From contig CBFFRP010000426.1 in assembly GCA_965644295.1 (NCBI GenBank), positions 124,001-188,000 on the forward strand: a stretch of DNA of 64,000 nt, read 5' to 3'. The notes beneath the pieces are model-generated. The model ran no database searches, was not told where the DNA came from, and was given only the letters and a program-made list of their open reading frames with translations. The stretch comes from Paraphysomonas bandaiensis. Its lineage: Eukaryota > Protista > Chrysophyceae. How positions within the stretch are numbered: the stretch's first letter is position 1; every line of letters begins with the position of its first letter. Position numbers and translations under genes: made by a program. Of this stretch, positions 4,005 to 58,391 are shown one piece after another.

Positions 4005-4348
4005 ATACATACATACATACATACATACATACATACATACATACATACATACATACATACATACATACATACATACATACATACATACATACATACATAC
4101 ATACATACATACATACATACATACATACATACATACATACATACATACATACATACATACATACATACATACATACATACATACATACATACATACATAC
4201 ATACATACATACATACATACATACATACATACATACATACATACATACATACATACATACATACATACATACATACATACATACATACATACATACATAC
4301 ATACATACATACATACATACATACATACATACATACATACATACATAC
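4005..4348. repeat. (ATAC)n microsatellite, about 86 units
   Basis: Perfect tetranucleotide run read directly. Confidence 0.99.
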
Positions 4349-16535: not shown

Positions 16536-18839
16536 GTCGGTACTATTTCCCATATAAAATATTAATCAGTGAGGTTCACATCACCTGAACACATACAAGT
16601 GAATATGTTATATGCAACAATGCTAAGAAAGACAACAATACAAGCCAATCAAAGCATGTTACACAAAGTTAATTTTGCGATGCTAATGACAACTATAGCG
16701 TAGAGAACTGACTATAGATGTTTTACACAACGCGAGACATACGCGATACCTAACCGGTTATCCGAACAGGCAATCATATAATCCACATACATCATATGTA
16801 CCTTCCACTCCTCTGTCGGTACTATTTCCCATATAAAATATTACTCAGTGAGGTTCACATCACCTGAACACATACAAGTGAATATGTTATATGCAACAAT
16901 GCTAAGAAAGACAACAATACAAGCCAATCAAAGCATGTTACACAAAGTTAATTTTGCGATGCTAATGACAACTATAGCGTAGAGAACTGACTATAGATGT
17001 TTTACACAACGCGAGACATACGCGATACCTAACCGGTTATCCGAACAGGCAATCATATAATCCACATACATCATATGTACCTTCCACTCCTCTGTCGGTA
17101 CTATTTCCCATATAAAATATTACTCAGTGAGGTTCACATCACCTGAACACATACAAGTGAATATGTTATATGCAACAATGCTAAGAAAGACAACAATACA
17201 AGCCAATCAAACATGTTACACAAAGTTAATTTTGCGATGCTAATGACAACTATAGCGTAGAGAACTGACTATAGATGTTTTACACAACGCGAGACATACG
17301 CGATACCTAACCGGTTATCCGAACAGGCAATCATATAATCCACATACATCATATGTACCTTCCACTCCTCTATCGGTACTATTTCCCATATAAAATATTA
17401 CTCAGTGAGGTTCACATCACCTGAACACATACAAGTGAATATGTTATATGCAACAATGCTAAGAAAGACAACAATACAAGCCAATCAAAGCATGTTACAC
17501 AAAGTTAATTTTGCGATGCTAATGACAACTATAGCGTAGAGAACTGACTATAGATGTTTTACACAACGCGAGACATACGCGATACCTAACCGGTTATCCG
17601 AACAGGCAATCATATAATCCACATACATCATATGTACCTTCCACTCCTCTGTCGGTACTATTTCCCATATAAAATATTACTCAGTGAGGTTCACATCACC
17701 TGAACACATACAAGTGAATATGTTATATGCAACAATGCTAAGAAAGACAACAATACAAGCCAATCAAAGCATGTTACACAAAGTTAATTTTGCGATGCTA
17801 ATGACAACTATAGCGTAGAGAACTGACTATAGATGTTTTACACAACGCGAGACATACGCGATACCTAACCGGTTATCCGAACAGGCAATCATATAATCCA
17901 CATACATCATATGTACCTTCCACTCCTCTGTCGGTACTATTTCCCATATAAAATATTACTCAGTGAGGTTCACATCACCTGAACACATACAAGTGAATAT
18001 GTTATATGCAACAATGCTAAGAAAGACAACAATACAAGCCAATCAAACATGTTACACAAAGTTAATTTTGCGATGCTAATGACAACTATAGCGTAGAGAA
18101 CTGACTATAGATGTTTTACACAACGCGAGACATACGCGATACCTAACCGGTTATCCGAACAGGCAATCATATAATCCACATACATCATATGTACCTTCCA
18201 CTCCTCTATCGGTACTATTTCCCATATAAAATATTACTCAGTGAGGTTCACATCACCTGAACACATACAAGTGAATATGTTATATGCAACAATGCTAAGA
18301 AAGACAACAATACAAGCCAATCAAAGCATGTTACACAAAGTTAATTTTGCGATGCTAATGACAACTATAGCGTAGAGAACTGACTATAGATGTTTTACAC
18401 AACGCGAGACATACGCGATACCTAACCGGTTATCCGAACAGGCAATCATATAATCCACATACATCATATGTACCTTCCACTCCTCTATCGGTACTATTTC
18501 CCATATAAAATATTACTCAGTGAGGTTCACATCACCTGAACACATACAAGTGAATATGTTATATGCAACAATGCTAAGAAAGACAACAATACAAGCCAAT
18601 CAAAGCATGTTACACAAAGTTAATTTTGCGATGCTAATGACAACTATAGCGTAGAGAACTGACTATAGATGTTTTACACAACGCGAGACATACGCGATAC
18701 CTAACCGGTTATCCGAACAGGCAATCATATAATCCACATACATCATATGTACCTTCCACTCCTCTGTCGGTACTATTTCCCATATAAAATATTACTCAGT
18801 GAGGTTCACATCACCTGAATACATACAAGTGAATATGTT
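16536..18839. repeat. Tandem array of a 279-bp unit (8 full units plus about 74 bp)
   Basis: Unit starts at 16536, 16815, 17094, 17372, 17651, 17930, 18208, 18487 and 18766; the units are near-identical. Confidence 0.97.
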
Positions 18840-19336
18840 CTATGCATTTGATGACAATGGGATGCTGCTCTGTTCGTGTGATGGTTGCTTGCTCTCATTG
18901 CAATCTCTGCATTCAACACCGTTACAGTATTCCATGGTATTCCGTTGTATACCGCATACATTCTACTGTATATTTGTTTGTATATGTCAGATTTTAGTAC
19001 AGATGTACTTATCTACTTTCGTGTACCTGTACATCAATTCATTCTTGCTACACCTACCCCTTTATTACCCTGTACCTCTGTACTGCTTTGTACTGCTCGA
19101 CTTCTGTTTAGAACACAATATTTTCCTGGACATATCCTGAACAATCCTATCGACACTAGTGTAGAGATACATACATATCTCCTGCCTGTACTTCCATACA
19201 TAACACACCACTGCAGATATCAGTACACACATATGTATATATAACTAAACAACACCACACATACTTATCAATCCTCTAGATACACTCATATGATCTTCAT
19301 GTAATCACATCTAAATCATTTCTATATTAATCTGAT

Positions 19337-28087: not shown

Positions 28088-28927
28088 ATGGGTATGTTGA
28101 GTATATCTGATCTCAACGATGACGTGATTCGTCTGATCATCTCTATGATCCCACACAAAGCTCTCCTTCCTGTGATGATGACTTGCAAGAGACTTCACGA
28201 CATGGCTGATAACACGAGAGCTAAGAGCAGAGACAAGAGCAGAGAGAGACTTGAGTCACATGCATCTCACTACTGTATGACCAACTCCATGGTCTCATGG
28301 GCTCTGTCTATGGGCTGCCCTCACCTCAAACTAATGAATACATGTGCACTATACGGCAGACTACAGCAGATGATATACTTACACACACATATATATATAC
28401 ATACACATAATGCAGATCATGCTTCTATTGAATTGGATACACATCAGTGGCTTCATGCACAGGACCCTCCATGTCCATGGAATGTATATAATTCAATGAC
28501 TTGCAGAGATGCTGCAAGAGGTGGGCACTTGGATGTTCTTAGGTGGCTTCGTTCACAGGACCCTCCATGTCCATGGAATGGATTTACTTGCAGTGCTGCT
28601 GCAAGATGTGGGCACTTAGATGTTCTTAGATGGCTTCGTTCACAGGACCCTCCATGTCCATGGAGTGAATACACGAAGCTGCTACATGACGTGGACGCTT
28701 GGATGTTCTGGAATGGCTTCGTTCACAGGACCCTCCATGTCCATGGGATGAAGTTACCTGCAAATTTGCTGCAGAGACACTTGGTTGTTCTTAGGTGGCT
28801 TCGTTCACAGGACCCTCCATGTCCATGGAATGAATTTACTTGCAGTGCTGCTGCAGAGGGTGGGCACTTGGATGTTCAGAGATGGCTTCGTTCACAGGAC
28901 CTTCCATGTCCAATGTCCATGTTTTGA
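28088..28927 (+). CDS. F-box-like + CPW-type ankyrin-like repeat protein, short paralog (5 repeats; two compensating frameshifts)
   Basis: N-terminal ISDLNDDVIRLIISMIPHKALLPVMMTCKRLHDMA matches the F-box pattern; repeats TC.AA..GHLDVLRWLRSQDPPCPW; near-identical to the start of 57765-51523. Confidence 0.8.
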   Translation: MGMLSISDLNDDVIRLIISMIPHKALLPVMMTCKRLHDMADNTRAKSRDKSRERLESHASHYCMTNSMVSWALSMGCPHLKLMNTCALYGRLQQMIYLHTHIYIHTHNADHASIELDTHQWLHAQDPPCPWNVYNSMTCRDAARGGHLDVLRWLRSQDPPCPWNGFTCSAAARCGHLDVLRWLRSQDPPCPWSEYTKLLHDVDAWMFWNGFVHRTLHVHGMKLPANLLQRHLVVLRWLRSQDPPCPWNEFTCSAAAEGGHLDVQRWLRSQDLPCPMSMF

Positions 28928-29268
28928 AATGATATGCCTCTCTGCTACATAGTATGGACATTTGGATGTTTTGAATATCTTTATTTATATTAGGCATTAT
29001 GGCCTAGTTTTCAGGAGGTGCCTAATATTCTAATCAGACATGAAATAATAAGAATCTCATGATTATTTTGTATATGGATAAAGAGAGCATTTTTAAAATC
29101 CACATCGACTGTATTACATACAGGGGGATTCAAAATACGTAATCGGAATCTTTTCGTATATGGCTATATATATAGGAAAGTCTGATTATTACATGAGAAC
29201 GGTTGTGTACAGAAACTAGTTTATATCTATATACTAACTACAGTAATAACTAGATTTGCTAAATACTA

Positions 29269-32596: not shown

Positions 32597-32903
32597 TATA
32601 CCAAACGATCACTATTTTACAACCATCAATTTGCTTCTATTTTTCACAACTTGAGTTTGAAGTACAACAAGTATGAAAATTATTTTTACAACTGGACAAT
32701 TTTTATTTTTGATATTTTGCAAAAAATTCGAAGAGGTGTGTCTGTCTCACTTGCCTCAACTTAAGTTCTTGTCAAAATGAAAACTCCGGATTTGATACAC
32801 TGAAATATAAGAAATTTATGAGGTTTTGACAAATTGTAGGGTGGGATTTTGACGAATTCCCGAGTTTTCATGGGGAAATGCATATTATTTGCTCTGCTGT
32901 ATA

Positions 32904-35900
32904 CCTATAACGAAAGAAAATCGGCCCCCTCAAAAAAATCGGCCCCCCCATTTTCTCATCCATTTTCCCACCCCCCCTTGAACTGATATGCACATACATA
33001 CATGACATTAACTCCAACACCACAACTAACCACAACATACACCAATACAATCAGACACATACACGCTGTCTTTACAATGGAGTATGTCAACATTATATGC
33101 AGCCATTTTCACCATCACACCCTGTGTCTCGAGTGATTAGACAGAGGAGCCCTGCGTCCTCAGGATGGCTATTGATCGCTATATGCAGAGCAGTGGGATA
33201 CATTAACCACTACTGAGACTCTATATTCGACTTACTACTGCAGACAAAGTGTTTGGAGAGGTGAGAGGGTGTGGGAGGGTCACGTATCATCTCTGTGGCT
33301 TGGATTCTGTGCCGGTCAGTATTTGTCCATAGGGAGGAGGGGTCCATACAGTGCACATCAGGTCATACATTCACCAGAAATTTGAAATGCGCCAAAATAA
33401 TATGCCATATCGATGGATGAAGGGCATTGATATGGCATATCCACCAATTTGATTAGATTTAAGTGCACCGCTGCCGTCCGTAGAAATTATGTGGATATGC
33501 TACCTTGTCACCATCCGAGTCAGCTTATCAGTGTCGGAACCGACTTATCGAATGGAAGATAAGCGATCTTTATTGGTAGAAAGAGATTTGGCACTTTATG
33601 GGCTTCCTTGTGCGCTGTACAATGATTAATGTTGCAAATACCCTTGACTAGCTTGTTGGTTGCAGGCACCCCATGTTAGGGTGCTGTAGGGTCACAGCAA
33701 GCAGTGTTCACTCATGTCATATATGTAGGATACCTAATATATTGCACTCATTCAGCTTTATTGGGGTCTTGTTACATCTACAATGCCATTGTTGCCATAC
33801 TTGTCGATTTAAATGGGCTTTACGGCGAGTGCAGCTGATGATTGTTGAAAGTCTATACATGTCTAGTCTTTGTTGGCTATTCTCAAGACTTTGTCCCGAA
33901 CTATCTCTCCACGCGCCTTCTGTGAATCTGTATGTTTTATGTCTATACATATATATTACCTTTGTATGTACTTTATATGCACATGTGTGTACTACGTTTC
34001 CCTTATGTTTACTAGGTTTATATGGGTGTATGAGGTTTATTATATATATTACCTACAATGCTTCATATAAGCGTCAGTGTTCGAATATATATACTCTTGA
34101 CTTATGTATGAGAATATGTTATCTGTGTGTTTTTGTATGCATATATATACGAGCGTTCTGAATGTATGTGTATCTGTGTGTTGTCATGTAGATATTTATA
34201 ATAATAATATGATATCGTTATAGTCGATGTGAACTTGCTTGTATAAGTACTAGTCATAGTAAAGTAGCTATATATATATGTAGATCTTAAATACAACGAT
34301 TGGCAGTATGTGTTTACAAGAAGTATAGGTATAAGGTATAAGTTTGCTTATCACACAAGTGTCTAAATCTAAACTACGAAGGAGTACAGTAGCTGATTTA
34401 TATTGACAGAAGTAGTGTACTATTCCAAGTTATATGTGGGCTAGCATCGAGGTATTTGCTGGAATAATTACATGCATAACAAGACAGTATACTATCAAAC
34501 CACACATATACCGGCATGAATTTATAAGCAAATATTAGAATATTAGTCAAGTGGTTATCTAGTTTCAAATAGCAATCAATAGACGATAACAACCTAGGAA
34601 TTATAAGCACACTACCAGTACTCTCGCCACTAAACAGATTAGTTGGGAATATGTGCGAACAATAGCATACAACTACGCAATGTTTTAATGGTTTAAGTAT
34701 TACGTTTTCAGTGATAATACGGGATGAAGTGGTAGATGTAATGTTTGACTTAATTTTTGTGTTTTCGTTTATGTCACACTTCGTTGTCGCGCAGCACATA
34801 GAGAGTTGGTTGAGGGTGGTATTGAACCTGGTACTACCATCATTTGTCATAGTAATCTCACGCATGTTGAACTTTAGTCAAAGAGTGTTAATCATGAAGT
34901 AGTTGTTGAAAGATACAAAGCGGAGATGGCTGCTGGAGATCTTAAGTTCATTATAGAATACATGTTGATGAAGAAAATATTCGTATAAAGGTTTCAAGAC
35001 AGCAACAGCTATAAAGCAGAAAGGAAAAGAATAAAAAAGGCAGAAGATGCGCTGTAAAGAGCAACAAATGAAAGAACTTGACACTTAAAAAACAAAATCA
35101 GAGTCTTAATCGAAACGTAGAGCTGATATTACTTTGATAGGCGGAGGCAAATTGTACATGCTCTATCAGTTCTAGCTGCTCCTAAAACCAGGAGCACTTG
35201 AACTTAAAATGACTAATTCAATTTAAGGACATTCAATAGTTCGTTGTACCATTGCGTAGTTGTATGCTATTGTTCGCACATATTCCCAACTAATCTGTTT
35301 AGTGGCGAGAGTACTGGTAGTGTGCTTATAATTCCTAGGTTGTTATCGTCTATTGATTGCTATTTTGAAACTAGATAACCACTTGACTAATATTCTAATA
35401 TTTGCTTATAAATTCATGCCGGTATATGTGTGGTTTGATAGTATACTGTCTTGTTATGCATGTAATTATTCCAGCAAATACCTCGATGCTAGCCCACATA
35501 TAACTTGGAATAGTACACTACTTCTGTCAATATAAATCAGCTACTGTACTCCTTCGTAGTTTAGATTTAGACACTTGTGTGATAAGCAAACTTATACCTT
35601 ATACCTATACTTCTTGTAAACACATACTGCCAATCGTTGTATTTAAGATCTACATATATATATAGCTACTTTACTATGACTAGTACTTATACAAGCAAGT
35701 TCACATCGACTATAACGATATCATATTATTATTATAAATATCTACATGACAACACACAGATACACATACATTCAGAACGCTCGTATATATATGCATACAA
35801 AAACACACAGATAACATATTCTCATACATAAGTCAAGAGTACATATATTCGAACACTGACGCTTATATGAAGCATTGTAGGTAATATATATAATAAACCT

Positions 35901-37629
35901 CGTACACCCATATAAACCTAGTAAACATAAGGGAAACGTAGTACACACATGTGCATATAAAGTACATACAAAGGTAATATATATGTATAGACATAAAACA
36001 TACAGATTCACAGAAGTCGCGTGGAGAGATAGTTCGGGACAAAGTCTTGAGAATAGCCAACAAAGACTAGACATGTATAGACTTTCAACAATCATCAGCT
36101 GCACTCGCCGTAAAGCCCATTTAAATCGACAAGTATGGCAACAATGGCATTGTAGATGTAACAAGACCCCAATAAAGCTGAATGAGTGCAATATATTAGG
36201 TATCCTACATATATGACATGAGTGAACACTGCTTGCTGTGACCCTACAGCACCCTAACATGGGGTGCCTGCAACCAACAAGCTAGTCAAGGGTATTTGCA
36301 ACATTAATCATTGTACAGCGCACAAGGAAGCCCATAAAGTGCCAAATCTCTTTCTACCAATAAAGATCGCTTATCTTCCATTCGATAAGTCGGTTCCGAC
36401 ACTGATAAGCTGACTCGGATGGTGACAAGGTAGCATATCCACATAATTTCGAACACTGACGCTTATATGAAGCATTGTAGGTAATATATATAATAAACCT
36501 CGTACACCCATATAAACCTAGTAAACATAAGGGAAACGTAGTACACACATGTGCATATAAAGTACATACAAAGGTAATATATATGTATAGACATAAAACA
36601 TACAGATTCACAGAAGGCGCGTGGAGAGATAGTTCGGGACAAAGTCTTGAGAATAGCCAACAAAGACTAGACATGTATAGACTTTCAACAATCATCAGCT
36701 GCACTCGCCGTAAAGCCCATTTAAATCGACAAGTATGGCAACAATGGCATTGTAGATGTAACAAGACCCCAATAAAGCTGAATGAGTGCAATATATTAGG
36801 TATCCTACATATATGACATGAGTGAACACTGCTTGCTGTGACCCTACAGCACCCTAACATGGGGTGCCTGCAACCAACAAGCTAGTCAAGGGTATTTGCA
36901 ACATTAATCATTGTACAGCGCACAAGGAAGCCCATAAAGTGCCAAATCTCTTTCTACCAATAAAGATCGCTTATCTTCCATTCGATAAGTCGGTTCCGAC
37001 ACTGATAAGCTGACTCGGATGGTGACAAGGTAGCATATCCACATAATTTCTACGGACGGCAGCGGTGCACTTAAATCTAATCAAATTGGTGGATATGCCA
37101 TATCAATGCCCTTCATCCATCGATATGGCATATTATTTTGGCGCATTTCAAATTTCTGGTGAATGTATGACCTGATGTGCACTGTATGGACCCCTCCTCC
37201 CTATGGACAAATACTGACCGGCACAGAATCCAAGCCACAGAGATGATACGTGATCCCCCCACACCCTCTCACCTCTCCAAACACTTTGTCTGCAGTAGTA
37301 AGTCGAATATAGAGTCTCAGTAGTGGTTAATGTATCCCACTGCTCTGCATATAGCGATCAATAGCCATCCTGAGGACGCAGGGCTCCTCTGTCTAATCAC
37401 TCGAGACACAGGGTGTGATGGTGAAAATGGCTGCATATAATGTTGACATACTCCATTGTAAAGACAGCGTGTATGTGTCTGATTGTATTGGTGTATGTTG
37501 TGGTTAGTTGTGGTGTTGGAGTTAATGTCATGTATGTATGTGCATATCAGTTCAAGGGGGGGTGGGAAAATGGATGAGAAAATGGGGGGGCCGATTTTTT
37601 TGAGGGGGCCGATTTTCTTTCGTTATAGG
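32904..37629. mobile_element. Foldback-type non-autonomous DNA transposon with 1.78-kb inverted arms (Tc1/mariner-pogo-like ends, TA TSD)
   Basis: 32904-34682 is the reverse complement of 35250-37629 apart from a 600-bp tandem duplication, a 1-nt indel and a few SNPs; 567-bp spacer. Ends TA|CCTATAACG...CGTTATAGG|TA, with the direct repeat AAAATCGGCCCCC twice in each tip. Confidence 0.85.
35848..37047. repeat. 600-bp tandem duplication inside the right arm of the foldback element
   Basis: 35848-36447 repeats at 36448-37047; the junction lies in the microhomology acatatattc/acataatttc. Confidence 0.95.
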
Positions 37630-37752
37630 TATACTGCTATGCACTCTGTACGAAGTCAGCATATGCATGTTACGTTATGATGCAGTGAGGTCAGAGTGCA
37701 TCTAATCCAATTGCATGCATCTACTCCTTTAACTCTGTATACATAGAACAAA

Positions 37753-40555: not shown

Positions 40556-43500
40556 TTATGTATTCTGAGCTGCCATCGCGGCTACCATCGTCGCTATAAC
40601 TTCGCCAACCAGCACCGAGAGATTCTAGAATATACATTACATAATTTTAAATATAGATATAATTTTTACCTTGACAGGCTCGTGCGATCTGCTTTTACGC
40701 ATCGAACACATAACTGCCTTGAATGCAATTACGCAAATAACCCATTGCCACTGCGGGAACCTCATTAACTTTCGATGGTAGGGAAATACCGTCGATGACG
40801 CCGTTTTTTGTGCCGACTCTCCGCCAGGAAGTATATCTGCTATCAACTGCTGCACCTCATCGGCGCTGACAATTTGGGGGATAATTTTAATGCGCGTCAG
40901 CGCTGCTACAATGGGGTCATCCTGTGATAGACTCGCTCGAGTTGGAATTCCTCTGCGGATTGGAGAGACAACAACAGGACCGACCGCTGTATGCTTCGAT
41001 GAGAGCCGCTTGAGCTGTTTCTGATCCGCTTCGAATAAAATTAACATATCTTTCTCGCATGCCTCTATGCGGAAGAGAATATCCAAGGAGAACATGAGGC
41101 TATGCTCATCCCGATCTCTGGCATCATCCGGAGAGGCCAATACCAGGCTCCGTTGCAGTGGTGGAAGTACACACTCCTCAAGAAGGCGGCGAAACGAAGC
41201 GGATTCCATCATGATTTTCGACCACATCACAAACCACTTCTCGTCCTTATCAGCAGACATGTGCTGACTATCCTCTCGAGATAAAGACAGTGAAATAGTG
41301 TGGGGAGAAAAAACGGGGAGTTGTACCGTGCCTTCGAACCGGAGTTGAGCAAACGCACAAAGAAAAACAAGAAACTCCTCGAAAGAGAGCAAGGGTGAGG
41401 TAGACTCGCCGTCTTGGTCATCTCCTGCAGAATTGGAATGAAGGGGACTCTGTGCAAGAGAGTGCGCAGATATCTGGTGCAGCAGCACGCCCACATCGGA
41501 AAGCATTGTTGTATCTGTGAGAAGATCCAGTTTGGAAAGGAGAGCAAAGAGATTAGGACCAGATAACTTCCCAGGGTCAGAACTATCTCCGCAGGAACAA
41601 TATGTCGCGAACACCGGCCAAAGTGCTTCTTTTGTTCCCTCAAGTATCTGGTCATTTTGTACACATGCAGTATCTTTAGTCGTTTTCACAGTATCGACCT
41701 CAAGAACAGACTCGCCACTGTGCAATAATCCCTTGGGCGGTGACACTGGTGGTCGGGTGTCAATCTTAAGTGCATCCAAAACTTCACGCCTTATACTTGA
41801 ACCCGTCATTCGCGGTGGACTTCTTCCAGTAAAAACCACCGAATTACCACTGGCCGACGTAATAGACGAGGTATTCGTTTCCTGTGTTCGCATTGCCAGA
41901 ATCTTATTCAGCATCTCTGCACTGCGGGTCTCCACGGTCCGCAGTAAGTCGCTGATGTCTCCATCCTGTGTAGAAGATACAAAGGTTGATTCATTAATTG
42001 TAGAGGTCAGTGATGACAGTTTAGACATGTTGAAATCAGGAGACAGGGATGTTCTATGCTGAATGGTAGCAGGAGACAGAGAATCACCGTGAGGTGCCAA
42101 TTTCGCAGATTGTCCAACAGTAGTTGGTGAGAGCAACATTTTCGGAAGCATACGTACACTACTAGATACTTGAACAGATACCCTCTTCGGGATAATAGCA
42201 GCTTCTTTCAACAAAGATATGAGAGGACTCATATAATCCATTCCCCAGGTACTACCAGCACCATCGGCATTACGTGTTCTGAACAGTGTGTCCGCACTAC
42301 TCTCGCGGGAATTCGACTGTAGTGTAGGCTGGTTGTGCCCCAGAGAGGAACGATAGGCTTCACAATAGATAGACACTGAAGAGTCCATCATTGTGGGACA
42401 AGCTTTTTTGACTGCATCAAAGAGTTCAGTCTTAGAGCAATCTTTGTGTAAAGCTCCAACGCTTTCCCAAAGGGAGTACGCACAACGAATCAACAACTCC
42501 TCAAACTCGGTAAGTGATATACCAATATCGTTTTCGGCTGACGGGGGCTGTACATTACTCTGAACTGTGTATTGGTCCTGGGACTCATTCAAAAATGACG
42601 GCTGTGATAACTTGTATGTTCCCCTAATTCTTGAACACAGAGATGCTTTCATAAGAACAGAGGCAGTCCCAAGAGTAAAAGCTGATGAAGATACAATGTA
42701 TCTGCACACGTCAAATAGAAGGGGCTCTTTTTCGCCATTCAAAGCACATGGTGAACAATTTCCCAGGGCTTTATAGGTGTCAAGCATCCATTTATATTCC
42801 CGATTCAACGCGGCAATGACACGATGACCACCATATCGGAGCAAGTCTTCCAGAGGCACGTACTTCCCTTTCCCTGGTGATCGGGTCGGGGGTAGCTCAT
42901 CATCTGCCGCCCCTGCCAAGCATGGAATGATGCTAGTGTGTAGAACTCTAACTGAGCTGGAAGGGCATGAATTGTGAGGAATGGACAATTGAAGATGCCC
43001 CAGGAGGTTCAATAAGGAGGCTGGATCCATCGATGTAGTCAGTGGTGGGATCACAGAGTCACCCCATTCCTGCAGCCTAGAAGGTGGGAAAGCGTCTACA
43101 AGAGCCTTCCTAAAGGCGGACCATGCAATCGACAATGAAACCAGGGTGCCTGTGACACCACTGCACTTGCAGAAATGAACAAATCGAGGGGCATCCCACA
43201 ACTCGAGTGCTGGGCGTGGAGGGACTTTCATAAAACCTACAGATGAGGTAGCTCGTTTGGTAGCCGTCAATGGAAGAGTATTATAGAAATTCGTCATACT
43301 AAATTCAACAATTTCCTCAAGGCTTGGCTCACCCTCACCAAGTATACCGGAAAATATCCCATCAACAGAGTTGGATTCCAGTAGCTCAATACTTGATGAA
43401 ACACGATCAAATAGATCTGTTAACTGTCTTCTCTTGCCTTCCTCTGATGATTCAGAGGTGGAAAAGCAGCACAACAGCACAAAAACAATGAAGCTGGAGA

Positions 43501-46311
43501 AGGTCAACGTTGATACACCTGAGAGTGTTGTTATCATAATAAACAACTCTTCACACCTCTCCTTCTCCCACTCATGTCCAATCGCCCACTCCACTGCTGC
43601 ACGCTGTGAAATCTGCATATCTGACGCTCTATCTAACAACACCGCACGTGAGGGGAACGGTGTGACTACGTCTTCAAGAAAGGGATTACGGCGAACGCCT
43701 TGTAAGGTAGACATAGACTTTCTAGTAAAATAATTTCCCCGTAAACAACGTAAATACTCCCATAGAAAAAGAAAGCTTCCTTCGCGCATTAGCGTCAAAT
43801 TCGAAAAAGTAAACATGCCATCTATCATGTCCATAAGCTTCTCAAGAATACTGCGGACATCGTCGGAGTCGGAAGTTGGACTTAACGCATGACGAAGAAA
43901 TAATTCCAATTCCTTCGCCCCTATTTTAAAACTTGTGCAAATATATCGAAAGTCCAGTTGCAGGCCCGCGAACTCCTTGTTAGCGTCAGTTAAGTATGTG
44001 ATGTCGTGTCGACTTTTTGCTGGATCCGATATTAAGTCAGTCAGATCCCAGGGTGTCAACGATAATGAGTTCACAGGAAAATGGAGAAGAAGTAATACTA
44101 CGACCTGCTGAGTAAAAGACATGTCTATATGCTTCAACGATTTGGATATGTCAGTTCGGCGGAAAGCACATAAATTTGCAGCCGTCAAAAGGCTGTTCAA
44201 GATGTTACAAAGATCCGAGGAGAAGTTCTCAACTGCGACGACCTCGCGCTCACTGTCATTAGATATTCCGTGATTACTATTCGGATCCACCTTACTCTCT
44301 TCAAATTGCCTAATAGTAATTCGATCCATTATCGGTCGGTCTACAGTCATAGGATCGCATATTTCCAGCAGAAGACAAAGTCGATGCACTCTGTCCTCAA
44401 CTGCAAATTGTGTGATTACATGTGAGTGATAACCATCACTAAGATGCATCGATGTTTCAGGTGCCAATGCAGTCCACGTTCCCTCTTCATCATCCTTGGT
44501 GAGTCGTGAAAGTAAAATACAGTCAGGAGACGGGCTGAACTCTTCCCCCACACCACCAAACACAACCTGCGCAACACCAAAAATAACCTCCATAGCCTCC
44601 CGCATTGATAACTTCTCAGCATCCGCTATAGTTTCCTGGTAGCATACATCACGCGATAGTACATATGATGCTGTAGATATAACCACATCCAGTTGAGCGA
44701 AGTGGGGTACAATCCCCGCTTCCGTCAATAAATCAACTAGTGGGTTGAAATAGACATTACGTTTCTCTTCAGTCAAACAAAACCCAGAGTAGTCCGGAGG
44801 CATACTAGACAATACACGATCATCCGCTTTAATAGAAGTCATACGTCTAAGAATACGACCCATCGGTTCGTCTAAGTCCCTCAAAACGCGAGCACCACGT
44901 GTGGAGTAGAGGTCCTCAATGAGAGATGGGATGGGTTGTGGACAAGCGAAGAGGAGTGTGGGAAACCGCATCGCAATGACACTGGCATCGACAGCTATGT
45001 CTGACGAGCCAATCAGGCATTGAGTATAGTAATCAGCGGCACTGGAACCGTGAATCAACTGACCAGTAGCTGGCCCATAGTCTCCTGGACAATCGACGCG
45101 TACCCCTCCATCATTCGATGCACATACTGTGGAAAGTGTCCCTGGAACACGACTTACAGGCACTAAAGCCTGTGCCCCTCCGGCAGCTGCCTGCTGGAAT
45201 ACATCACTGAGAGCGCAGAGGTAACTTGGTCCCTGGATTAGACCACCCTGTCGACAGACCCAAAGCAGTAATTTGGGGCTCAGACCGACGGAAAGGCTAT
45301 CGTTGGACTCGTATGTCTTCCAGCTATCCAACGCTCGATGCAGCAAATATTCAGCTGCTGCCTGAAGGATAGCATGTAAGCCGTGGTGATAGGAGGATGG
45401 AGACGACGCTGTTGGTGGGGACTCCACTGAGGAAGCTGCAAAACCCAAAATTTGTAAAAAATCAGAGAAAGTGAGAACGCCGTCCGTGTTATCAGCCTCA
45501 CGAGTTGCTCCAATAGACGCCAAAATCGAGGAGCAGTGCATCAGCTGCTCTGCGTTGACCACCCTGTCAGTAATACCAGTATTCTGGAAAGCTCGTAGTA
45601 ATACATCTACCGGGAGAACGAGATTGTCCTGAACCACCACCCGCCATACATGTGTCAGCGTGCACAGTCTCTGCGGCGCCTTAATCTGTACTGAGGTTAG
45701 CTTACTAGAAATAGTCCACGCATCACTTACATTCTCATGCAGGTGGAAGTACCAGAGTCGAAGGAAACCATGGAAGAGTTGCATGCCCCCAAGTAGAGCT
45801 CCTTTCACCCTGTTGTCAAACTTACTGGAAAAAGTCAACACCTCCCACGAGGAAGCGAGCGGGATAATTCTCTACAACAGCACAATGATAAATGTAAGGA
45901 ATGAGTGGATGACAATTACTTCTGTGAGAAGAATATGGAGCGACTTCCTTGCGCATCCAACGAGGTCGTAGTACAAGAAGCATGCGATTCCACGGAGCCA
46001 AGCGTAAAACTGTTCGTAAGACATCGCACCCCCACTATCTGCACTTGAAGTGTCGTTAGTGGAAAGTCTAGCAGCCTCACATTCCAAGACAGATATCTTA
46101 TTTCCAAGAAGCCCAAGATCTCCCAAGAAGAGCACAAGCCCATCAGTTGCATTGTCTGGATGATCATCCTTTATATATAACGACACATCATATGACATAC
46201 ACTCATATGGTTATCATACAGTACCTTTAATAGATAATGCTCATACATATAGTACAAGAGCTTGGCTATTTCTTGAAGAGACTGTCTGATAGTGCTCTTA
46301 TCGCTATCCAT
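40556..46311 (-). CDS. Large (about 1,850 aa) protein of unknown function with repeated EF-hand-like/p25-alpha-like helical modules
   Basis: 1734-aa ORF plus small 5' exons (ATG 46311, MDSDKSTIRQ) and a 3' exon ending ...AAQNT*. Recurrent motifs MSYEQFYAWL, LTFSDFLQIL, ISLTEFEELLIRCA and VFATYC...KLSGPNLFALLSKL...LSFEEFLVFL. The ORF may contain retained in-frame introns. Confidence 0.7.
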
Positions 46312-46525: not shown

Positions 46526-47761
46526 ATACATACATACATACATACATACATACATACATACATACATACATACATACATACATACATACATACATACATA
46601 CATACATACATACATACATACATACATACATACATACATACATACATACATACATACATACATACATACATACATACATACATACATACATACATACATA
46701 CATACATACATACATACATACATACATACATACATACATACATACATACATACATACATACATACATACATACATACATACATACATACTGTACATACAT
46801 ACATACATACATACATACATACATACATACATACATACATACATACATACATACATACATACATACATACATACATACATACATACATACATACATACAT
46901 ACATACATACATACATACATACATACATACATACATACATACATACATACATACATACATACATACATACATGCATACATACATACATACATACATACAT
47001 ACATACATACATACATACATACATACATACATACATACATACATACATACATACATACATACATACATACATACATACATACATACATACATACATACAT
47101 ACATACATACATACATACATACATACATACATACATACATACATACATACATACATACATACATACATACATACTGTACATACATACATACATACATACA
47201 TACATACATACATACATACATACATACATACATACATACATACATACATACATACATACATACATACATACATACATACATACATACATACATACATACA
47301 TACATACATACATACATACATACATACATACATACATACATACATACATACATACATACATACATACATACATACATACATACATACATACATACATACA
47401 TACATACATACATACATACATACATACATACATACATACATACATACATACATACATACATACATACATACATACATACATACATACATACATACATACA
47501 TACATACATACATACTGTACATACATACATACATACATGCATACATACATACATACATACATACATACATACATACATACATACATACATACATACATAC
47601 ATACATACATACATACATACATACATACATACATACATACATACATACATACATACATACATACATACATACATACATACATACATACATACATACATAC
47701 ATACATACATACATACATACATACATACATACATACATACATACATACATACATACATACA
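46526..47761. repeat. (ATAC)n microsatellite, about 1.24 kb, with three TG insertions
   Basis: Read directly; TG interruptions at 46790, 47175 and 47516 and two ATGC variants. Confidence 0.99.
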
Positions 47762-47975
47762 ATGCATGCATATGCGTATGCATACAGTGTATAGTGCAGT
47801 TAGGTATGGTATACTCCATACCATAAACGATTTAATTTTTACAGCGCATGTTCATATTCAGATATCACTCAGGAACACTCACTGTAATTGAATCAACTCT
47901 TCGCTGATTGAACACATCTCAAGAACAGTTCCTTCATAGAGTTGAATATACTTATTCCTTAACAGTAATATCAAT

Positions 47976-51127: not shown

Positions 51128-51522
51128 GTAGCGTAGCGCTAAATACTAGGATAATGGAATTTGTGCTGATTAGTTATGGGTAGAGGTCTAAATAGTATAT
51201 GTCTAGCATTCAACTAGCCACTATATTGGTGCAGGTTTTTAACGCCTATTTTTAAATAATAAGACTTTCAATATATCTTAAATCAATATTGCAGTCATCA
51301 TTCATCGGACAGTTGTATATTTCATCGGACAGTAATACACTCGATGTGGATTTTAAAAATGCTCTCTTTATCCATATACAAAATAATCATGAGATTTTTA
51401 TTATTTCATGACTGATTAGAATAATAGACACCTCCTGAAAACTAGGCCATAATGCATAATATGAATAGAGACATTTCAAAACATCCAGAGGTCCATACTA
51501 TGCAGCAGAGAGGCATATCATT

Positions 51523-54500
51523 TCAAAACATGGACATTGGACATGGAGGGTCCTGTGAACGAAACCATCTCAGAACATCCCAGTGCCTACCGTCTGCAGC
51601 AGCTTTGCAGGTATCTTCATTCCATGGACATTGAGGATAGTGTGAACGAAGCCACTTCAGAACATCCTAGTGTCCACCTCTTGCAGCAGCACTACAAGTC
51701 CGTCCATCCCATGGACATGGAGGGTCCTGTGAACGAAACCATCTCAGAACATCCCAGTGCCTACCGTCTGCAGCAGCTTTGCAAGTATCTTCATTCCATG
51801 GACATTGAGGATAGTGTGAACGAAGCCACTTCAGAACATCCTAGTGTCCACCTCTTGCAGCAGCACTACAAGTCCGTCCATCCCATGGACATGGAGGGGC
51901 CTGTGAACGAAACCATCTCAGAACATCCCAGTGCCTACCGTCTGCAGCAGCTTTGCAAGTATCTTCATTCCATGGACATTGAGGATAGTGTGAACGAAGC
52001 CACTTCAGAACATCCTAGTGTCCACCTCTTGCAGCAGCACTACAAGTCCGTCCATCCCATGGACATGGAGGGTCCTGTGAACGAAGCCATCGAAGAACAT
52101 CCCAGCGCCTACCGTTTGCAGCAGCTTTGCAAGTATCTTCATCCCAGGGACATGGAGGGTCCTGTGAGCGAAGCCACTTCAGAACATCCAAATGCCCACG
52201 ATCTGCAGCAGCACTACAAGTCCGTCCATCCCATGGACATTGAGGATACTGTGAACGAAGCCACTTCAGAACATCCAAGTGCCCACGATCTGCAGCAGCA
52301 CTACAAGTCCGTCCATCCCATGGACATGGAGGGTCCTGTGAACGAAACCATCTCAGAACATCCCAGTGCCTACCGTCTGCAGCAGCTTTGCAAGTATCTT
52401 CATTCCATGGACATTGAGGATAGTGTGAACGAAGCCACTTCAGAACATCCTAGTGTCCACCTCTTGCAGCAGCACTACAAGTCCGTCCATCCCATGGACA
52501 TGGAGGGGCCTGTGAACGAAGCCATCGAAGAACATCCCAGTGCCTACCGTCTGCAGCAGCTTTGTAAGTATCTTCATCCCAGGGACATGGAGGGTCCTGT
52601 GAGCGAAGCCACTTCAGAACATCCAAATGAACACGATCTGCAGCAGCACTACAAGTCCGTCCATCCTATGGACATTGAGGATACTGTGAACGAAGCCACT
52701 TCAGAACATCCAAGTGTCCACCTCTTGCAGCAGCACTGCAAGTAAATCCATCCCATGGACATGGAGGGTCCTGTGAACGAAGCCACTTCAGAACATCCAA
52801 GTATCCACCTCTTGCAGCAGCTCTGCAAGTATATTCATCCCAGGGACATGGAGGGTCCTGTGAACGAAACCATCTCAGAACATCCCAGTGCCTACCGTCT
52901 GCAGCAGCTTTGCAAGTATCTTCATTCCATGGACATTGAGGATAGTGTGAACGAAGCCACTTCAGAACATCCTAGTGTCCACCTCTTGCAGCAGCACTAC
53001 AAGTCCGTCCATCCCATGGACATGGAGGGTCCTGTGAACGAAGCCATCGAAGAACATCCCAGTGCCTACCGTCTGCAGCAGCTTTGTAAGTATCTTCATC
53101 CCAGGGACATGGAGGGTCCTGTGAGCGAAGCCACTTCAGAACATCCAAATGAACACGATCTGCAGCAGCACTACAAGTCCGTCCATCCTATGGACATTGA
53201 GGATACTGTGAACGAAGCCACTTCAGAACATCCAAGTGTCCACCTCTTGCAGCAGCACTGCAAGTAAATCCATCCCATGGACATGGAGGGTCCTGTGAAC
53301 GAAGCCACTTCAGAACATCCAAGTATCCACCTCTTGCAGCAGCTCTGCAAGTATATTCATCCCAGGGACATGGAGGGTCCTGTGAACGAAACCATCTCAG
53401 AACATCCCAGTGCCTACCGTCTGCAGCAGCTTTGCAAGTATCTTCATTCCATGGACATTGAGGATAGTGTGAACGAAGCCACTTCAGAACATCCTAGTGT
53501 CCACCTCTTGCAGCAGCACTACAAGTCCGTCCATCCCATGGACATGGAGGGTCCTGTGAACGAAGCCATCGAAGAACATCCCAGTGCCTACCGTCTGCAG
53601 CAGCTTTGTAAGTATCTTCATCCCAGGGACATGGAGGGTCCTGTGAGCGAAGCCACTTCAGAACATCCAAATGAACACGATCTGCAGCAGCACTACAAGT
53701 CCGTCCATCCTATGGACATTGAGGATACTGTGAACGAAGCCACTTCAGAACATCCAAGTGTCCACCTCTTGCAGCAGCACTGCAAGTAAATCCATCCCAT
53801 GGACATGGAGGGTCCTGTGAACGAAGCCACTTCAGAACATCCAAGTATCCACCTCTTGCAGCAGCTCTGCAAGTATATTCATCCCAGGGACATGGAGGGT
53901 CCTGTGAACGAAACTATCTCAGAACATCCCAGTGCCTACCGTCTGCAGCAGCTTTGCAAGTATCTTCATCCCAGGGACATGGAGGGTCCTGTGAGCGAAG
54001 CCACCTAAGAACATCCAAGTATCCACCTCTTGCAGCAGCTCTGCTAGTATATTCATCCCAGGGACATGGAGGGTCCTGTGAACGAAACTATCTCAGAACA
54101 TCCCAGTGCCTACCGTCTGCAGCAGCTTTGCAAGTATCTTCATCCCAGGGACATGGAGGGTCCTGTGAGCGAAGCCACCTAAGAACATCCAAGTGCCCAC
54201 GATCTGCAGCAGCACTACAAGTCCGTCCATCCCATGGACATTGAGGATACTGTGAACGAAGCCACTTCAGAACATCCAAGTATCCACCTCTTGCAGCAGC
54301 TCTGCAAGTATATTCATCCCAGGGACATGGAGGGTCCTGTGAACGAAACCATCTCAGAACATCCCAGTGCCTACCGTCTGCAGCAGCTTTGCAAGTATCT
54401 TCATTCCATGGACATTGAGGATAGTGTGAACGAAGCCACTTCAGAACATCCTAGTGTCCACCTCTTGCAGCAGCACTACAAGTCCGTCCATCCCATGGAC

Positions 54501-57410
54501 ATGGAGGGTCCTGTGAACGAAACCATCTCAGAACATCCCAGTGCCTACCGTCTGCAGCAGCTTTGCAAGTATCTTCATTCCATGGACATTGAGGATAGTG
54601 TGAACGAAGCCACTTCAGAACATCCTAGTGTCCACCTCTTGCAGCAGCACTACAAGTCCGTCCATCCCATGGACATGGAGGGTCCTGTGAACGAAACCAT
54701 CTCAGAACATCCCAGTGCCTACCGTCTGCAGCAGCTTTGCAAGTATCTTCATCCCAGTGACATGGAGGGTCCTGTGAGCGAAGCCACTTCAGAACATCCA
54801 AATGCCCACGATCTGCAGCAGCACTACAAGTCCGTCCATCCCATGGACATTGAGGATACTGTGAACGAAGCCACTTCAGAACATCCAAGTGTCCACCTCT
54901 TGCAGCTGCTTCGCAAGTAAATCCATCCCATGGACATGGAGGGTCCTGTGAACGAAGCCATCGAAGAACATCCCAGCGCCTACCGTCTGCAGCAGCTTTG
55001 CAAGTATCTTCATCCCAGGGACATGGAGGGTCCTGTGAGCGAAGCCACTTCAGAACATCCAAATGCCCACGATCTGCAGCAGCACTACAAGTCCGTCCAT
55101 CCCATGGACATTGAGGATACTGTGAACGAAGCCACTTCAGAACATCCAAGTGCCCACCTCTTGCAGCAGCACTGCAAGTAAATCCATCCCATGGACATGG
55201 AGGGTCCTGTGAACGAAGCCATCGAAGAACATCCCAGCGCCTACCGTCTGCAGCAGCTTTGCAAGTATCTTCATTCCAGGGACATGGAGGGTCCTGTGAG
55301 CGAAGCCACTTCAGAACATCCAAATGCCCACGATCTGCAGCAGCACTACAAGTCCGTCCATCCCATGGACATTGAGGATACTGTGAACGAAGCCACTTCA
55401 GAACATCCAAGTGCCCACGATCTGCAGCAGCACTACAAGTAAATCCATCCCATGGACATGGAGGGTCCTGTGAACGAAGCCATCGAAGAACATCCCAGCG
55501 CCTACCGTCTGCAGCAGCTTTGCAAGTATCTTCATCCCAGGGACATGGAGGGTCCTGTGAACGAAGCCACTTCAGAACATCCAAATGCCCACGATCTGCA
55601 GCAGCACTACAAGTCCGTCCATCCCATGGACATGGAGGATACTGTGAACGAAGCCACTTCAGAACATCCAAGTGCCCACGATCTGCAGCAGCACTACAAG
55701 TCCGTCCATCCCATGGACATGGAGGGTCCTGTGAACGAAGCCATCGAAGAATATCCACGTGCCCACTCTCTGCAGCAGCTTTGCAAGTATCTTCATTCCA
55801 TGGACATGGAGGGTCCTGTGAACGAAGCCAATCCAGAATATCCAAATGCCCACGATATGCAGCAGCACTACAAGTCCGTCCATCCCATGGACATTGAGGA
55901 TACTGCGAGCGAAGCCACTTCAGAACATCCAAATGAACACGATCTGCAGCAGCACTACAAGTCCGTCCATCCTATGGACATTGAGGATACTGTGAACGAA
56001 GCCACTTCAGAACATCCAAGTGTCCACCTCTTGCAGCTGCTTCGCAAGTAAATCCATCCCATGGACATGGAGGGTCCTGTGAACGAAGCCATCGAAGAAC
56101 ATCCCAGCGCCTACCGTCTGCAGCAGCTTTGCAAGTATCTTCATCCCAGGGACATGGAGGGTCCTGTGAGCGAAGCCACTTCAGAACATCCAAATGCCCA
56201 CGATCTGCAGCAGCACTACAAGTCCGTCCATCCCATGGACATTGAGGATACTGTGAACGAAGCCACTTCAGAACATCCAAGTGCCCACCTCTTGCAGCAG
56301 CACTGCAAGTAAATCCATCCCATGGACATGGAGGGTCCTGTGAACGAAGCCATCGAAGAACATCCCAGCGCCTACCGTCTGCAGCAGCTTTGCAAGTATC
56401 TTCATTCCAGGGACATGGAGGGTCCTGTGAGCGAAGCCACTTCAGAACATCCAAATGCCCACGATCTGCAGCAGCACTACAAGTCCGTCCATCCCATGGA
56501 CATTGAGGATACTGTGAACGAAGCCACTTCAGAACATCCAAGTGCCCACGATCTGCAGCAGCACTACAAGTAAATCCATCCCATGGACATGGAGGGTCCT
56601 GTGAACGAAGCCATCGAAGAACATCCCAGCGCCTACCGTCTGCAGCAGCTTTGCAAGTATCTTCATCCCAGGGACATGGAGGGTCCTGTGAACGAAGCCA
56701 CTTCAGAACATCCAAATGCCCACGATCTGCAGCAGCACTACAAGTCCGTCCATCCCATGGACATTGAGGATACTGTGAACGAAGCCACTTCAGAACATCC
56801 AAGTGCCCACGATCTGCAGCAGCACTACAAGTCCGTCCATCCCATGGACATGGAGGGTCCTGTGAACGAAGCCATCGAAGAATATCCACGTGCCCACTCT
56901 CTGCAGCAGCTTTGCAAGTATCTTCATTCCATGGACATGGAGGGTCCTGTGAACGAAGCCAATCCAGAATATCCAAGTGCCCACCCTCTGCAGCTGCTTC
57001 GCAAGAATATAAACTCCATCGACATGGAGGGTCCTGTGAACGAAGCCACATCAGAACATCCAAATGCCCACTTTCTGCAGCAGCACTGCAAGTCTGTGAA
57101 TCCCATAGACATGGAGGATGTTGTGAACGAAGCCACTTCAGAACATCCAAGTGTCCACCTCTTGCAGCATCTCTGCAAGTCCGCCCACCCCAGGGACATG
57201 GAGGGTCCTGTGAACGAAGCCATCGAAGAATATCCAAGTGCCCACTCTCTGCAGCAGCTTTGCAAGTATCTTCATTCCATGGACATGGAGGGTCCTGTGA
57301 ACGAAGCCACCTAAGAACATCCACGTGTCCACCTCTTGCAGCATCTCTGCAAGTCATTGAATTATATACATTCCATGGACATGGAGGGTCCTGTGCATGA
57401 AGCCACTGAT
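51523..57410 (-). repeat. Coding tandem array of 67 x 87-bp ankyrin-like units, all in one frame, interrupted by 14 TAG codons
   Basis: The anchor ggacat at 57377 and 51539 gives (5838-9)/87 = 67 units. 57765 to 51523 is 6243 nt = 2081 codons and ends with the same CPMSMF* as the short paralog. Confidence 0.93.
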
Positions 57411-57765
57411 GTGTATCCAATTCAATAGAAGCATGATCTGCATTATGTGTATGTGTATATGTATGTGTGTGTAAGTATTTCATCTGCTGTAATCTGCCGT
57501 ATAGTGCACATGTATTCATTAGTTTGAGGTGTGGGCAGCCCATAGACAGAGCCCATGAGACCATTGAGTTGGTCATACAGTAGTGAGATGCATGTGACTC
57601 TACTCTCTCTCTCCTCCTAACTCTGCTCTTAACTCTCGTGTTATCAGCCATGTCGTGAAGTCTCTTGCAAGTCATCATCACAGGAAGGAGAGCTGTGTGT
57701 GGGATCATAGAGATGATGATACGAATCACGTCATCGTTGAGATCAGATATACTCAACATACCCAT
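55972..57765 (-). CDS. F-box-like + CPW-type ankyrin-like repeat protein, long paralog (597 aa and 16 repeats to the first TAG; frame continues to TGA at 51523)
   Basis: F-box pattern ISDLNDDVIRIIISMIPHTALLPVMMTCKRLHDMA; 29-aa repeats CPWxxxTCxAAAxxG[H/R][L/W]DVL[K/R]WLRSQ[D/Y]P[P/Q]. Confidence 0.85.
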   Translation of the reverse strand: MGMLSISDLNDDVIRIIISMIPHTALLPVMMTCKRLHDMADNTRVKSRVRRRERVESHASHYCMTNSMVSWALSMGCPHLKLMNTCALYGRLQQMKYLHTHTYTHTHNADHASIELDTHQWLHAQDPPCPWNVYNSMTCRDAARGGHVDVLRWLRSQDPPCPWNEDTCKAAAESGHLDILRWLRSQDPPCPWGGRTCRDAARGGHLDVLKWLRSQHPPCLWDSQTCSAAAESGHLDVLMWLRSQDPPCRWSLYSCEAAAEGGHLDILDWLRSQDPPCPWNEDTCKAAAESGHVDILRWLRSQDPPCPWDGRTCSAAADRGHLDVLKWLRSQYPQCPWDGRTCSAAADRGHLDVLKWLRSQDPPCPWDEDTCKAAADGRRWDVLRWLRSQDPPCPWDGFTCSAAADRGHLDVLKWLRSQYPQCPWDGRTCSAAADRGHLDVLKWLRSQDPPCPWNEDTCKAAADGRRWDVLRWLRSQDPPCPWDGFTCSAAARGGHLDVLKWLRSQYPQCPWDGRTCSAAADRGHLDVLKWLRSQDPPCPWDEDTCKAAADGRRWDVLRWLRSQDPPCPWDGFTCEAAARGGHLDVLKWLRSQYPQCP

Positions 57766-58391
57766 ACTGATGATATGATGAGGTTACGTGAGTCTGATGG
57801 AGTGTGTATACATACACAGCAGATGACAGTGACTCACATCTGTACAGCAGGACACATACATACATACACTGCACTGCACTGCACTCTGTGTGTGGGAACA
57901 TCATTCTGGTGACACTTCCTGGGGCACAGAATACTGCTGTATATGATAGTATACACTGCTGTACATATCTGCTGCTGTGTGTGCAATGTATGTACGTGTA
58001 TACCTATATAGTAGTACGTGTATACCTGTACACTATGTATATGGAGTGTCGGCCACACGTGTACGTGGTATACACGGATATACGTACACACTGCTATACG
58101 CCTTGCACCTTGTTGTCCATGTAATGAGTACATGGTATACAGGACGGTATATAGTATGGTGTGTGGTGGCTTGCAGCAATTAAGTGGTTGGTATGACTGT
58201 ATATGTACAGTACATATACACACACAGCAGCAGTGCAGATATATACCCTCATATATATATACATACAGACATCTCTGCATATAACAGTAGCGATATAACA
58301 CCATAGATATTCATATAGCAAGTGTCAACTTGTGGTGGTATAGATATATTGTTGGTTGAGTTGTCTATCGTATCAGCGCATAGATAGCATC

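Follow-up and report, generated by a model that had tools for sequence, protein, structure and literature searches.

Fourteen copied TAG stops and a low-diversity distal part in a 67-unit ankyrin-type repeat array of an F-box-like gene family in Paraphysomonas bandaiensis

Why does a gene that is interrupted by a stop codon after 16 repeat units carry 51 further units in the same frame? This question is raised by a locus of the chrysophyte Paraphysomonas bandaiensis, located on the minus strand between positions 51523 and 57765 of a 64,000-nucleotide (nt) stretch of contig CBFFRP010000426.1 (assembly GCA_965644295.1, positions 124,001 to 188,000 of the forward strand). This whole stretch was analysed and is called the window hereafter, and positions refer to it unless another contig is named. 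The gene encodes an F-box-like head followed by a long array of ankyrin-type units. A previous interpretation, made without database searches and referred to below as the sequence-only reading, had suggested that the units beyond the stop act as a reservoir of cassettes from which recombination reprograms a binding surface. Our analysis favours another answer. It is probable, in our opinion, that the array overgrew recently and copied its own stops, that its product was truncated, and that the distal units are decaying.

Translation of the minus strand yielded a single frame that starts with the ATG at 57765 and encodes a head of 124 amino acids (aa), 67 units and the tail CPMSMF, followed by a TGA at 51525-51523. 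Unit 1 comprises 32 aa, and units 2 to 67 comprise exactly 29 aa (87 nt) each, with not a single insertion or deletion. The array was delimited at 51538-57354 by Tandem Repeats Finder, which reported periods of 174 and 261 nt. The G+C content of the array is approximately 51%, compared to approximately 40% in its surroundings. The first stop, the TAG at 55974-55972, is residue 3 of unit 17, which leaves 16 whole units upstream and 51 downstream. The sequence-only reading had described an F-box-like head with 67 in-frame units of 29 aa, 16 before the first stop and 51 after it, and this description was confirmed, except for the length of unit 1. Open reading frames (ORFs) of up to 402 aa on the plus strand over the array were rejected as genes; they are antisense by-products of a stop-poor repeat and are without independent support.

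The array consists of few sequences copied many times. Its 67 units represent only 32 DNA types, an exact 87-nt twin exists for most units from unit 6 onward, and the mean pairwise identity between units is 0.75. Both ends of the distal part are made of 2-unit repeats. Unique units (17, 18, 31, 36, 37, 39, 56, 61, 63 and 67) interrupt the repeat blocks, and the array is therefore not a simple periodic stack. The stops within the array, 14 in number, are all TAG and are confined to three unit positions. At position 3 TGG is changed to TAG in four units, at position 17 TTG is changed to TAG in eight units, and at position 22 TGG is changed to TAG in two units. Since units with a stop at the same position are exact or almost exact copies of each other, the 14 stops derive from three TAG mutations that were multiplied later, by duplications of 2, 6 and 13 units. 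Unit 17, for example, has its TAG and a Gly to Val change in common with distal units 43, 49 and 55. As TGG can become either TAG or TGA and TTG only TAG, the chance of three such events all yielding TAG is approximately 1 in 4. Repeat-induced point mutation was considered as a source of the TAG codons, and was not supported, one of the three events being a T to A transversion and the accompanying changes being mixed.

Two further observations concern the age of the expansion. The perfect conservation of the frame over 5.8 kb containing 14 stops is the expectation of very recent copying. When the head was compared with those of the closest paralogs, the synonymous divergence (dS) was 0.08-0.12 and the ratio of nonsynonymous to synonymous divergence (dN/dS) was 0.20-0.48, indicating that the gene has been constrained for most of its life and that the expansion is far younger.

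The distal units differ from the translated ones in what they contain. Variation among units is concentrated at fixed sites, namely the three residues after CPW, the one or two residues after TC, the two residues after AA, and the GHL/RHW/RRW stretch; all these sites had been listed beforehand from the letters and all were found again. The 51 distal units display only 11 signatures at the variable sites, 7 of which are already present in the translated part, whereas family-wide 405 signatures were counted in 564 units. This is far from a diverse store of donor cassettes of the type known from variable lymphocyte receptors (VLR), variant surface glycoproteins (VSG) or pilins. Departures from the scaffold amount to 1.9 per unit in the distal part versus 0.87 in the translated part, and the distal changes hit the most conserved residues, including Cys8 to Tyr or Ser, Gly15 to Val, Leu23 to Phe and Gln26 to His.

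We propose the following course of events. The locus is one member of a large, intronless and lineage-specific family of this marine protist. The N-terminal F-box-like motif would dock on the Skp1 subunit of an SCF ubiquitin ligase and the solenoid of 29-residue ankyrin-type units would bind the substrates to be targeted, with the specificity residues presumably found on the exposed side of the inner helix and on the turn that precedes it. Arrays of the family lengthen or shorten, in this view, when near-identical units recombine out of register or when replication slips between them. Here the expansion would have got out of hand very recently, proceeding by 2, 3, 6 and 13 units at a time, carrying along three point mutations to TAG and multiplying them to 14 copies. 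The protein would now stop after unit 16, at 597 aa, which is a typical size for the family, and this product may still work. The 51 distal units would then be an untranslated, decaying by-product of array instability, and no maintained cassette library.

The family was searched for in the 62.6-Mb genome, where its head gave 96 matches; approximately 70 of these are near-complete, and their open frames mostly measure 400-600 aa. Its size is roughly 70-90 genes. The census is based on 38 of these, the coding regions of which are devoid of introns and contain from 5 to 73 units. On another contig an intact paralog carries 73 gapless units in a 2274-aa ORF, and 47 of these units have exact twins; further intact paralogs carry approximately 50 units (1562 aa) and more than 30 units, respectively. 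The intact 73-unit gene indicates that long, freshly expanded arrays are real in this genome and sometimes coding. The nearest relative of a unit lies in the same gene for 67% of the units, versus 4% expected by chance, which points to concerted, within-gene evolution. No description of such a protist F-box/ankyrin family was found in the literature searched, which is no proof of novelty.

The closest members of the family are nearly invariant over approximately 45-65 nt 5' of the ATG and conserved over approximately 115-210 nt 3' of the stop, and no poly(A) tract was seen at the boundary of these shared flanks. The short shared flanks, the lack of introns and the scatter over many contigs hint at the duplication of a compact, gene-sized module. 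The possibility that the locus has an allelic haplotig was rejected, as even the closest paralog (contig C43) shares just approximately 65 nt upstream and approximately 200 nt downstream. An endogenous giant-virus element at the locus was rejected as well, since the locus is surrounded by ordinary genes of cellular type and by a Gypsy element, and the family is found on more than 60 contigs.

The ankyrin nature of the units is well supported. In the 597-aa ORF the Pfam profiles of the ankyrin clan (PF00023, PF12796, PF13637) matched with E-values of 8.4e-34 for Ank_4 (115 bits), 1.6e-25 for Ank and 2.3e-22 for Ank_2, and ankyrin profiles were above cut-off in all 35 family members searched. 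AlphaFold2, run with an alignment of the same 35 members, modelled the units as helix pairs with a predicted local distance difference test score (pLDDT) of 85-97, the helices covering unit positions 5-14 and 17-25. The best Foldseek matches were the Espin ankyrin domain and designed ankyrin repeat proteins (DARPins), at template modelling (TM) scores of only 0.3-0.47. In a HMMER alignment unit positions 1-26 correspond one-to-one to positions 1-26 of the DARPin repeat, four residues being deleted from the loop that follows helix 2, so that the unit is a shortened ankyrin repeat. It departs from the canonical repeat in its period, which is 29 and not 33 residues, in the hairpin finger, the tip of which is fixed as PP-CPW, and in the TPLH motif, in place of which x-T-C-x is found with a hypervariable His position.

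Among 501 distinct units from the 38 genes, the entropy peaks at positions 4, 5, 6, 9, 10, 13 and 14, and more weakly at position 21, while positions 1-3, 8, 11, 12, 15, 17, 20, 22-26, 28 and 29 are nearly fixed. In the model, positions 6, 9/10 and 13/14 line up on helix 1 as a stripe with i, i+3/4, i+7/8 spacing, positions 7, 8, 11 and 12 being conserved. The residues that vary thus occupy the exposed side of the inner helix, together with the preceding turn. As to the earlier query whether the variable sites form one face, entropy, model and HMMER alignment together indicate that they do. In solved complexes the binding surface of ankyrin domains is likewise the face of the inner helix and the turn (PMC4986451).

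The assignment of the head to the F-box family is marginal. The Pfam profile PF00646 matched 28 of the 35 family members at E≤0.01, with a best value of 2.3e-5, and the F-box motif is largely kept, as D-D-V-L-R-x-I-x-S followed by T-C-K-R-L/F. Together with the ankyrin evidence above, this supports the F-box-like head and ankyrin-type array of the sequence-only reading, the F-box match being at threshold. Skp1 genes are present in the genome, the main one on contig C421. When head residues 1-60 were co-folded with the C-terminal exon of Skp1, the complex scored 0.39, compared to 0.02 for the best control, which falls into the 'weak support' band; three runs had at least 90% of contacts in common, and the pLDDT of the partner was at least 65. 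In the calibration of this score, 51 of 78 solved complexes attained the mark, as did 2 of 108 mismatched pairs, and only 5 of the 78 scored 0.60 or less. Given the good prior from the motif, we regard the putative docking of the head on Skp1 as likely. The contig of the array also carries, outside the window (C426:23025-23165), a second and more divergent Skp1-like gene (54.6 bits).

Several points weigh against the proposed course of events. The PF00646 match of the head itself is at threshold (19.7 bits with the 597-aa ORF and 21.2 bits with the first 270 aa, for a cut-off of 20.5). In place of the canonical Leu-Pro the head has Leu9-Asn10, of which Leu9 is invariant and Asn10 nearly so in the 35 members. 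Its three helices (11-19, 23-32 and 34-42) were modelled by AlphaFold2 at a pLDDT of 40-60, which is low confidence, and a head profile had no match at E≤1 among the sequences of the Protein Data Bank. The score of the complex may reflect the memory of solved Skp1/F-box structures. As to selection, the ratio of nonsynonymous to synonymous differences (pN/pS) at the variable sites was 1.15 with their own synonymous baseline and 1.42 with an all-site baseline. The latter gave 1.7-2.2 when positions 6, 9 and 13 were considered, and the scaffold had a ratio of 0.4. All these values come from crude pairwise and minimum-spanning-tree counts on short, recombining units. The variable sites thus evolve at or somewhat above the neutral rate, which speaks for an absence of constraint and perhaps for mild diversifying selection, and is no proof of positive selection.

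Others among these points concern the locus as such. Only short contigs (60-190 nt) of public short-read runs could be aligned to the array, none of them spanning more than about two units, and their apparent 'joints', with sides of 20-30 nt, are untrustworthy. Two runs that contain distal units may be transcriptomes, and the exact 597-aa product was absent from the public-assembly records searched. Finally, a frame kept over 5.8 kb despite 14 stops would also fit some constraint beyond recent copying.

The lack of firm expression evidence bears on a more radical possibility, namely that the whole locus is a dead pseudogene, of which the 597-aa frame is a remnant, and that the local pair of paralogs is decaying. 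The neighbouring paralog (28088-28927, plus strand), situated 22.6 kb from the end of the array, encodes 279 aa with a head 92% identical, five units and the tail CPMSMF. Such a 5-unit paralog with the same head and tail about 22 kb away had been noticed earlier, and it is indeed there; what had been overlooked is that its units 3-4 are shifted to another frame by two compensating frameshifts, and that a stop lies in the frame proper to them. This paralog is probably decaying, unless it bears assembly indels. A frameshifted neighbour and an array full of stops are what a dead locus might look like. However, the head and units 1-16 are intact, the dN/dS of the head speaks for constraint, the truncated product is of a length common in the family (the closest paralog has 602 aa), and the conserved 5' flank has been retained. 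We therefore regard the death of the whole gene as unlikely.

It could also be argued that the length of the array is wholly or partly an assembly artefact, near-identical blocks having been stacked too often. Exact internal repeats of 791-884 nt are of the kind that assemblers mishandle, and no aligned sequence spans the region. Yet the array is punctuated by its unique units. A genome search for the stop-bearing unit pair gave no second locus at ≥99% identity, the runner-up reaching 87%, and a 121-nt contig from an independent public run matches this pair exactly, across a TAG. Contigs from other independent runs match unique array junctions exactly. These exact matches indicate that neither the unit variants nor their stops were introduced by errors in this assembly. 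With a separate contig carrying the intact 73-unit gene, built in the same manner, an array inflated by assembly appears quite improbable.

The reservoir proposed in the sequence-only reading fares slightly worse. It holds that the post-stop units are silent donors, moved by gene conversion or unequal exchange into the 16-unit part, where they would reprogram the binding surface. Sequence has in fact crossed the first stop, units 6-16 being identical to units 19-29, unit 17 has its TAG and its Gly to Val change in common with units 43, 49 and 55, and the frame is intact through the whole array. However, the identity across the first stop appears to be that of sequence duplicated over it, for which plain tandem duplication suffices and explains the unit identities equally well. 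There is also little to donate, given the few distal signatures and their overlap with those upstream, and stops and scaffold-breaking changes were amplified together with the distal units. Of 15 paralogs for which the sequence extends far enough downstream, just three have post-stop units (6, 2 and 1), which looks like occasional decay and not like a design of the family, while intact paralogs of up to 73 units have no silent part at all. One member, on contig C49, has an 824-aa frame followed by 6 in-frame units past its stop, and is a smaller case of a premature stop. The reservoir fails because of low signature diversity, scaffold damage, the rarity of such tails in paralogs and the sufficiency of tandem duplication, and we give it very little credence. 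The reshuffling of arrays, of which it was a part, stands insofar as repeat number does shift by out-of-register duplication, as seen in the 791- and 884-nt copies and in the range of 5-73 units. What falls is the store of cassettes: the post-stop part is a low-diversity amplification, in which three nonsense mutations were copied to 14 places, with approximately twice the scaffold departures.

Hardly credible, lastly, is a recoding of TAG, by readthrough or by UAG-to-UGG editing, into a protein of approximately 2080 aa, for although all 14 internal stops are TAG, 6 of them in place of Trp codons, and the frame runs open to the natural tail, just three independent mutations are involved, 8 of the 14 stops replace the Leu TTG of the nearest relative, scaffold-breaking missense changes are also present in the distal units, and TAG is the terminator of 14 of the 38 family genes. 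Taken together with the 1 in 4 chance of TAG-only stops, the use of TAG as a terminator also led us to reject an alternative genetic code; nothing points to a changed code.

The favoured explanation thus remains that of a recently overgrown array with copied stops. The features of the locus and of the rest of the window are compiled in Table 1.

Table 1. Features of the locus and other features of the window
Feature	Position	Strand	Description
597-aa ORF	55972-57765	-	Head, units 1-16 and 2 residues; ends at the premature TAG 55974-55972
F-box-like N-terminus	57622-57765	-	Residues 1-48; Pfam F-box at 6-46; predicted helices 11-19, 23-32 and 34-42; Leu-Asn replaces Leu-Pro
Linker and capping region	57394-57621	-	Residues 49-124; basic/acidic linker, degenerate ankyrin-like capping region and short Thr/His stretch coded by a microsatellite
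Units 1-16	55981-57381	-	Translated part of the array; units 1-5 divergent, units 6-16 built of 3-unit repeats
Units 17-67	51544-55980	-	51 units in frame, interrupted by 14 TAG stops; repeat DNA that is probably untranslated and decaying
Original C-terminal tail	51523-51543	-	CPMSMF and natural stop TGA 51525-51523; common to paralogs
Exact 791-nt stretch	54843-56764	-	Two copies 13 units (1131 nt) apart; units 6-16 = units 19-29, first stop spanned
Exact 884-nt run	52509-53914	-	Lag of 6 units (522 nt); 6-unit block present three times, includes two stop-bearing unit types
3' flank	51332-51522	-	Approximately 190 nt, conserved with paralogs; probable 3' untranslated region
5' flank	57766-57830	-	Approximately 45-65 nt nearly invariant in closest paralogs; probable 5' untranslated region or core promoter
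Convergent paralog	28088-28930	+	279-aa frame, 5 units, same head and tail; two compensating frameshifts in units 3-4
Retrotransposon pol	12-3605	+	Gypsy type (reverse transcriptase, RNase H, integrase); extends past the window start
Simple repeat, first array	4001-4348		Period of approximately 8 nt; same repeat as at 46526-47772, the two long arrays 98-99% alike
Simple repeat, second array	46526-47772		1.25 kb; strong GC skew (-0.55)
Tandem array	16535-18846		279-nt period, approximately 8 copies, identity ≥99%
Large inverted repeat	32899-34682 and 35250-37634		Arms 99.6% identical; adjoins a fatty-acid hydroxylase gene
Long open frame	40637-45841	-	1734 aa; no Pfam match at E≤1e-4

The best-known sources of F-box/ankyrin proteins are viruses and intracellular bacteria, which use them to subvert the ubiquitination system of their hosts; for hypervariable arrays of self-similar repeats, the best-known example is provided by immune-type receptors of fungi. 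Here, one cellular protist genome joins both features in approximately 70-90 genes, and giant-virus contigs carry near-identical unit types. The family therefore allows one to ask whether repeat shuffling retargets ubiquitin ligases in microbial eukaryotes, who borrowed the module from whom, and how such arrays fail. It is the last question that the present locus answers: a runaway expansion copies its own nonsense mutations, and most of the gene turns into satellite-like DNA. For annotation, the lesson is that an in-frame array is no evidence of a coding or functional array. The family and its relatives in giant viruses are of greater interest than the 51 dead units. The innate-immunity-like role suggested in the sequence-only reading is not supported by the present results. 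Speculatively, the family might be a protist counterpart of the fungal NOD-like receptor (NLR) and nematode F-box repertoires, that is, a set of SCF substrate receptors re-dealt by shuffling so that changing foreign proteins are recognised and degraded, in an arms race with giant viruses that have this F-box/29-residue ankyrin architecture too, the 67-unit locus being an overshoot capped by a stop; we consider this scenario rather unlikely as it stands.

Several known systems resemble the family. Fungal NLRs, such as Podospora nwd/HNWD (Dyrka et al. 2014), possess highly internally conserved ANK, TPR or WD arrays with repeat-number polymorphism and concerted evolution, and the selected sites of their repeats are on the inner helix and the hairpin (PMC4986451). 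Both systems have near-identical repeat arrays that vary in repeat number and are shuffled within and between paralogs, and in both the concave ankyrin face, with its inner helix and turn, bears the sites that are variable or under positive selection. In contrast to the fungal proteins, which have a NACHT or NB-ARC and an effector domain, the protist family has an N-terminal F-box-like motif, and no NACHT or NB-ARC Pfam match was found in the 597-aa ORF or in the 35 family members. The units have 29 residues here versus 33 in fungi, and positive selection is demonstrated in fungi alone. Taken over all unit pairs, the identity of 0.75 in the present array lies below the fungal criterion of 85% (PMC4986451); most of its units have exact twins.

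Among viruses, the poxvirus ANK proteins carry an F-box-like PRANC motif at the C-terminus and not at the N-terminus. Closer in sequence are giant-virus contigs of IMG/VR, which encode the 29-residue unit of this family, with its RSQ-(D/E)-PP-CPW motif, at 52-57% identity over the repeats; several of these homologues have F-box-like N-termini, and the contigs have a GC content of 25-36%. In giant viruses accordion-like ankyrin expansions have been described that also broke genes (Bodo saltans virus, PMC5871332), and repeat families are known from amoebal giant viruses (PMC5753266). Massive recent duplication that breaks coding sequences is common to both. Unlike its viral relatives, the protist family is cellular, situated on more than 60 contigs among ordinary host genes, and has a GC content of approximately 50% as against 25-36%.

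A constant scaffold with a handful of variable surface positions per unit is also the principle of DARPins. Under the HMMER alignment, unit positions 5, 13 and 14 coincide with what we take to be randomised positions of the DARPin library. The family differs from DARPins by its fixed PP-CPW hairpin tip and the loss of four loop residues, and it varies positions 4, 6, 9 and 10, compared to 2, 3 and 33 in DARPins, position 9 being that of the conserved His of TPLH.

The expanded F-box families of Caenorhabditis and of plants show positive selection in their substrate-binding domains (e.g. PMC8120010). Like the protist family, they are large, turn over rapidly, combine a conserved F-box with a variable target-binding part and include many pseudogenes, and the protist proteins may likewise be SCF adaptors. 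For the Caenorhabditis and plant families a role against foreign proteins has been proposed. They differ in having FTH, FBA, MATH, LRR or kelch domains, and in diversifying mainly by gene duplication and point change, without shuffling of near-identical tandem ankyrin units. Of all these systems, the fungal NLR arrays are the closest analogue by mechanism, the giant-virus proteins by sequence and the nematode F-box families by concept.

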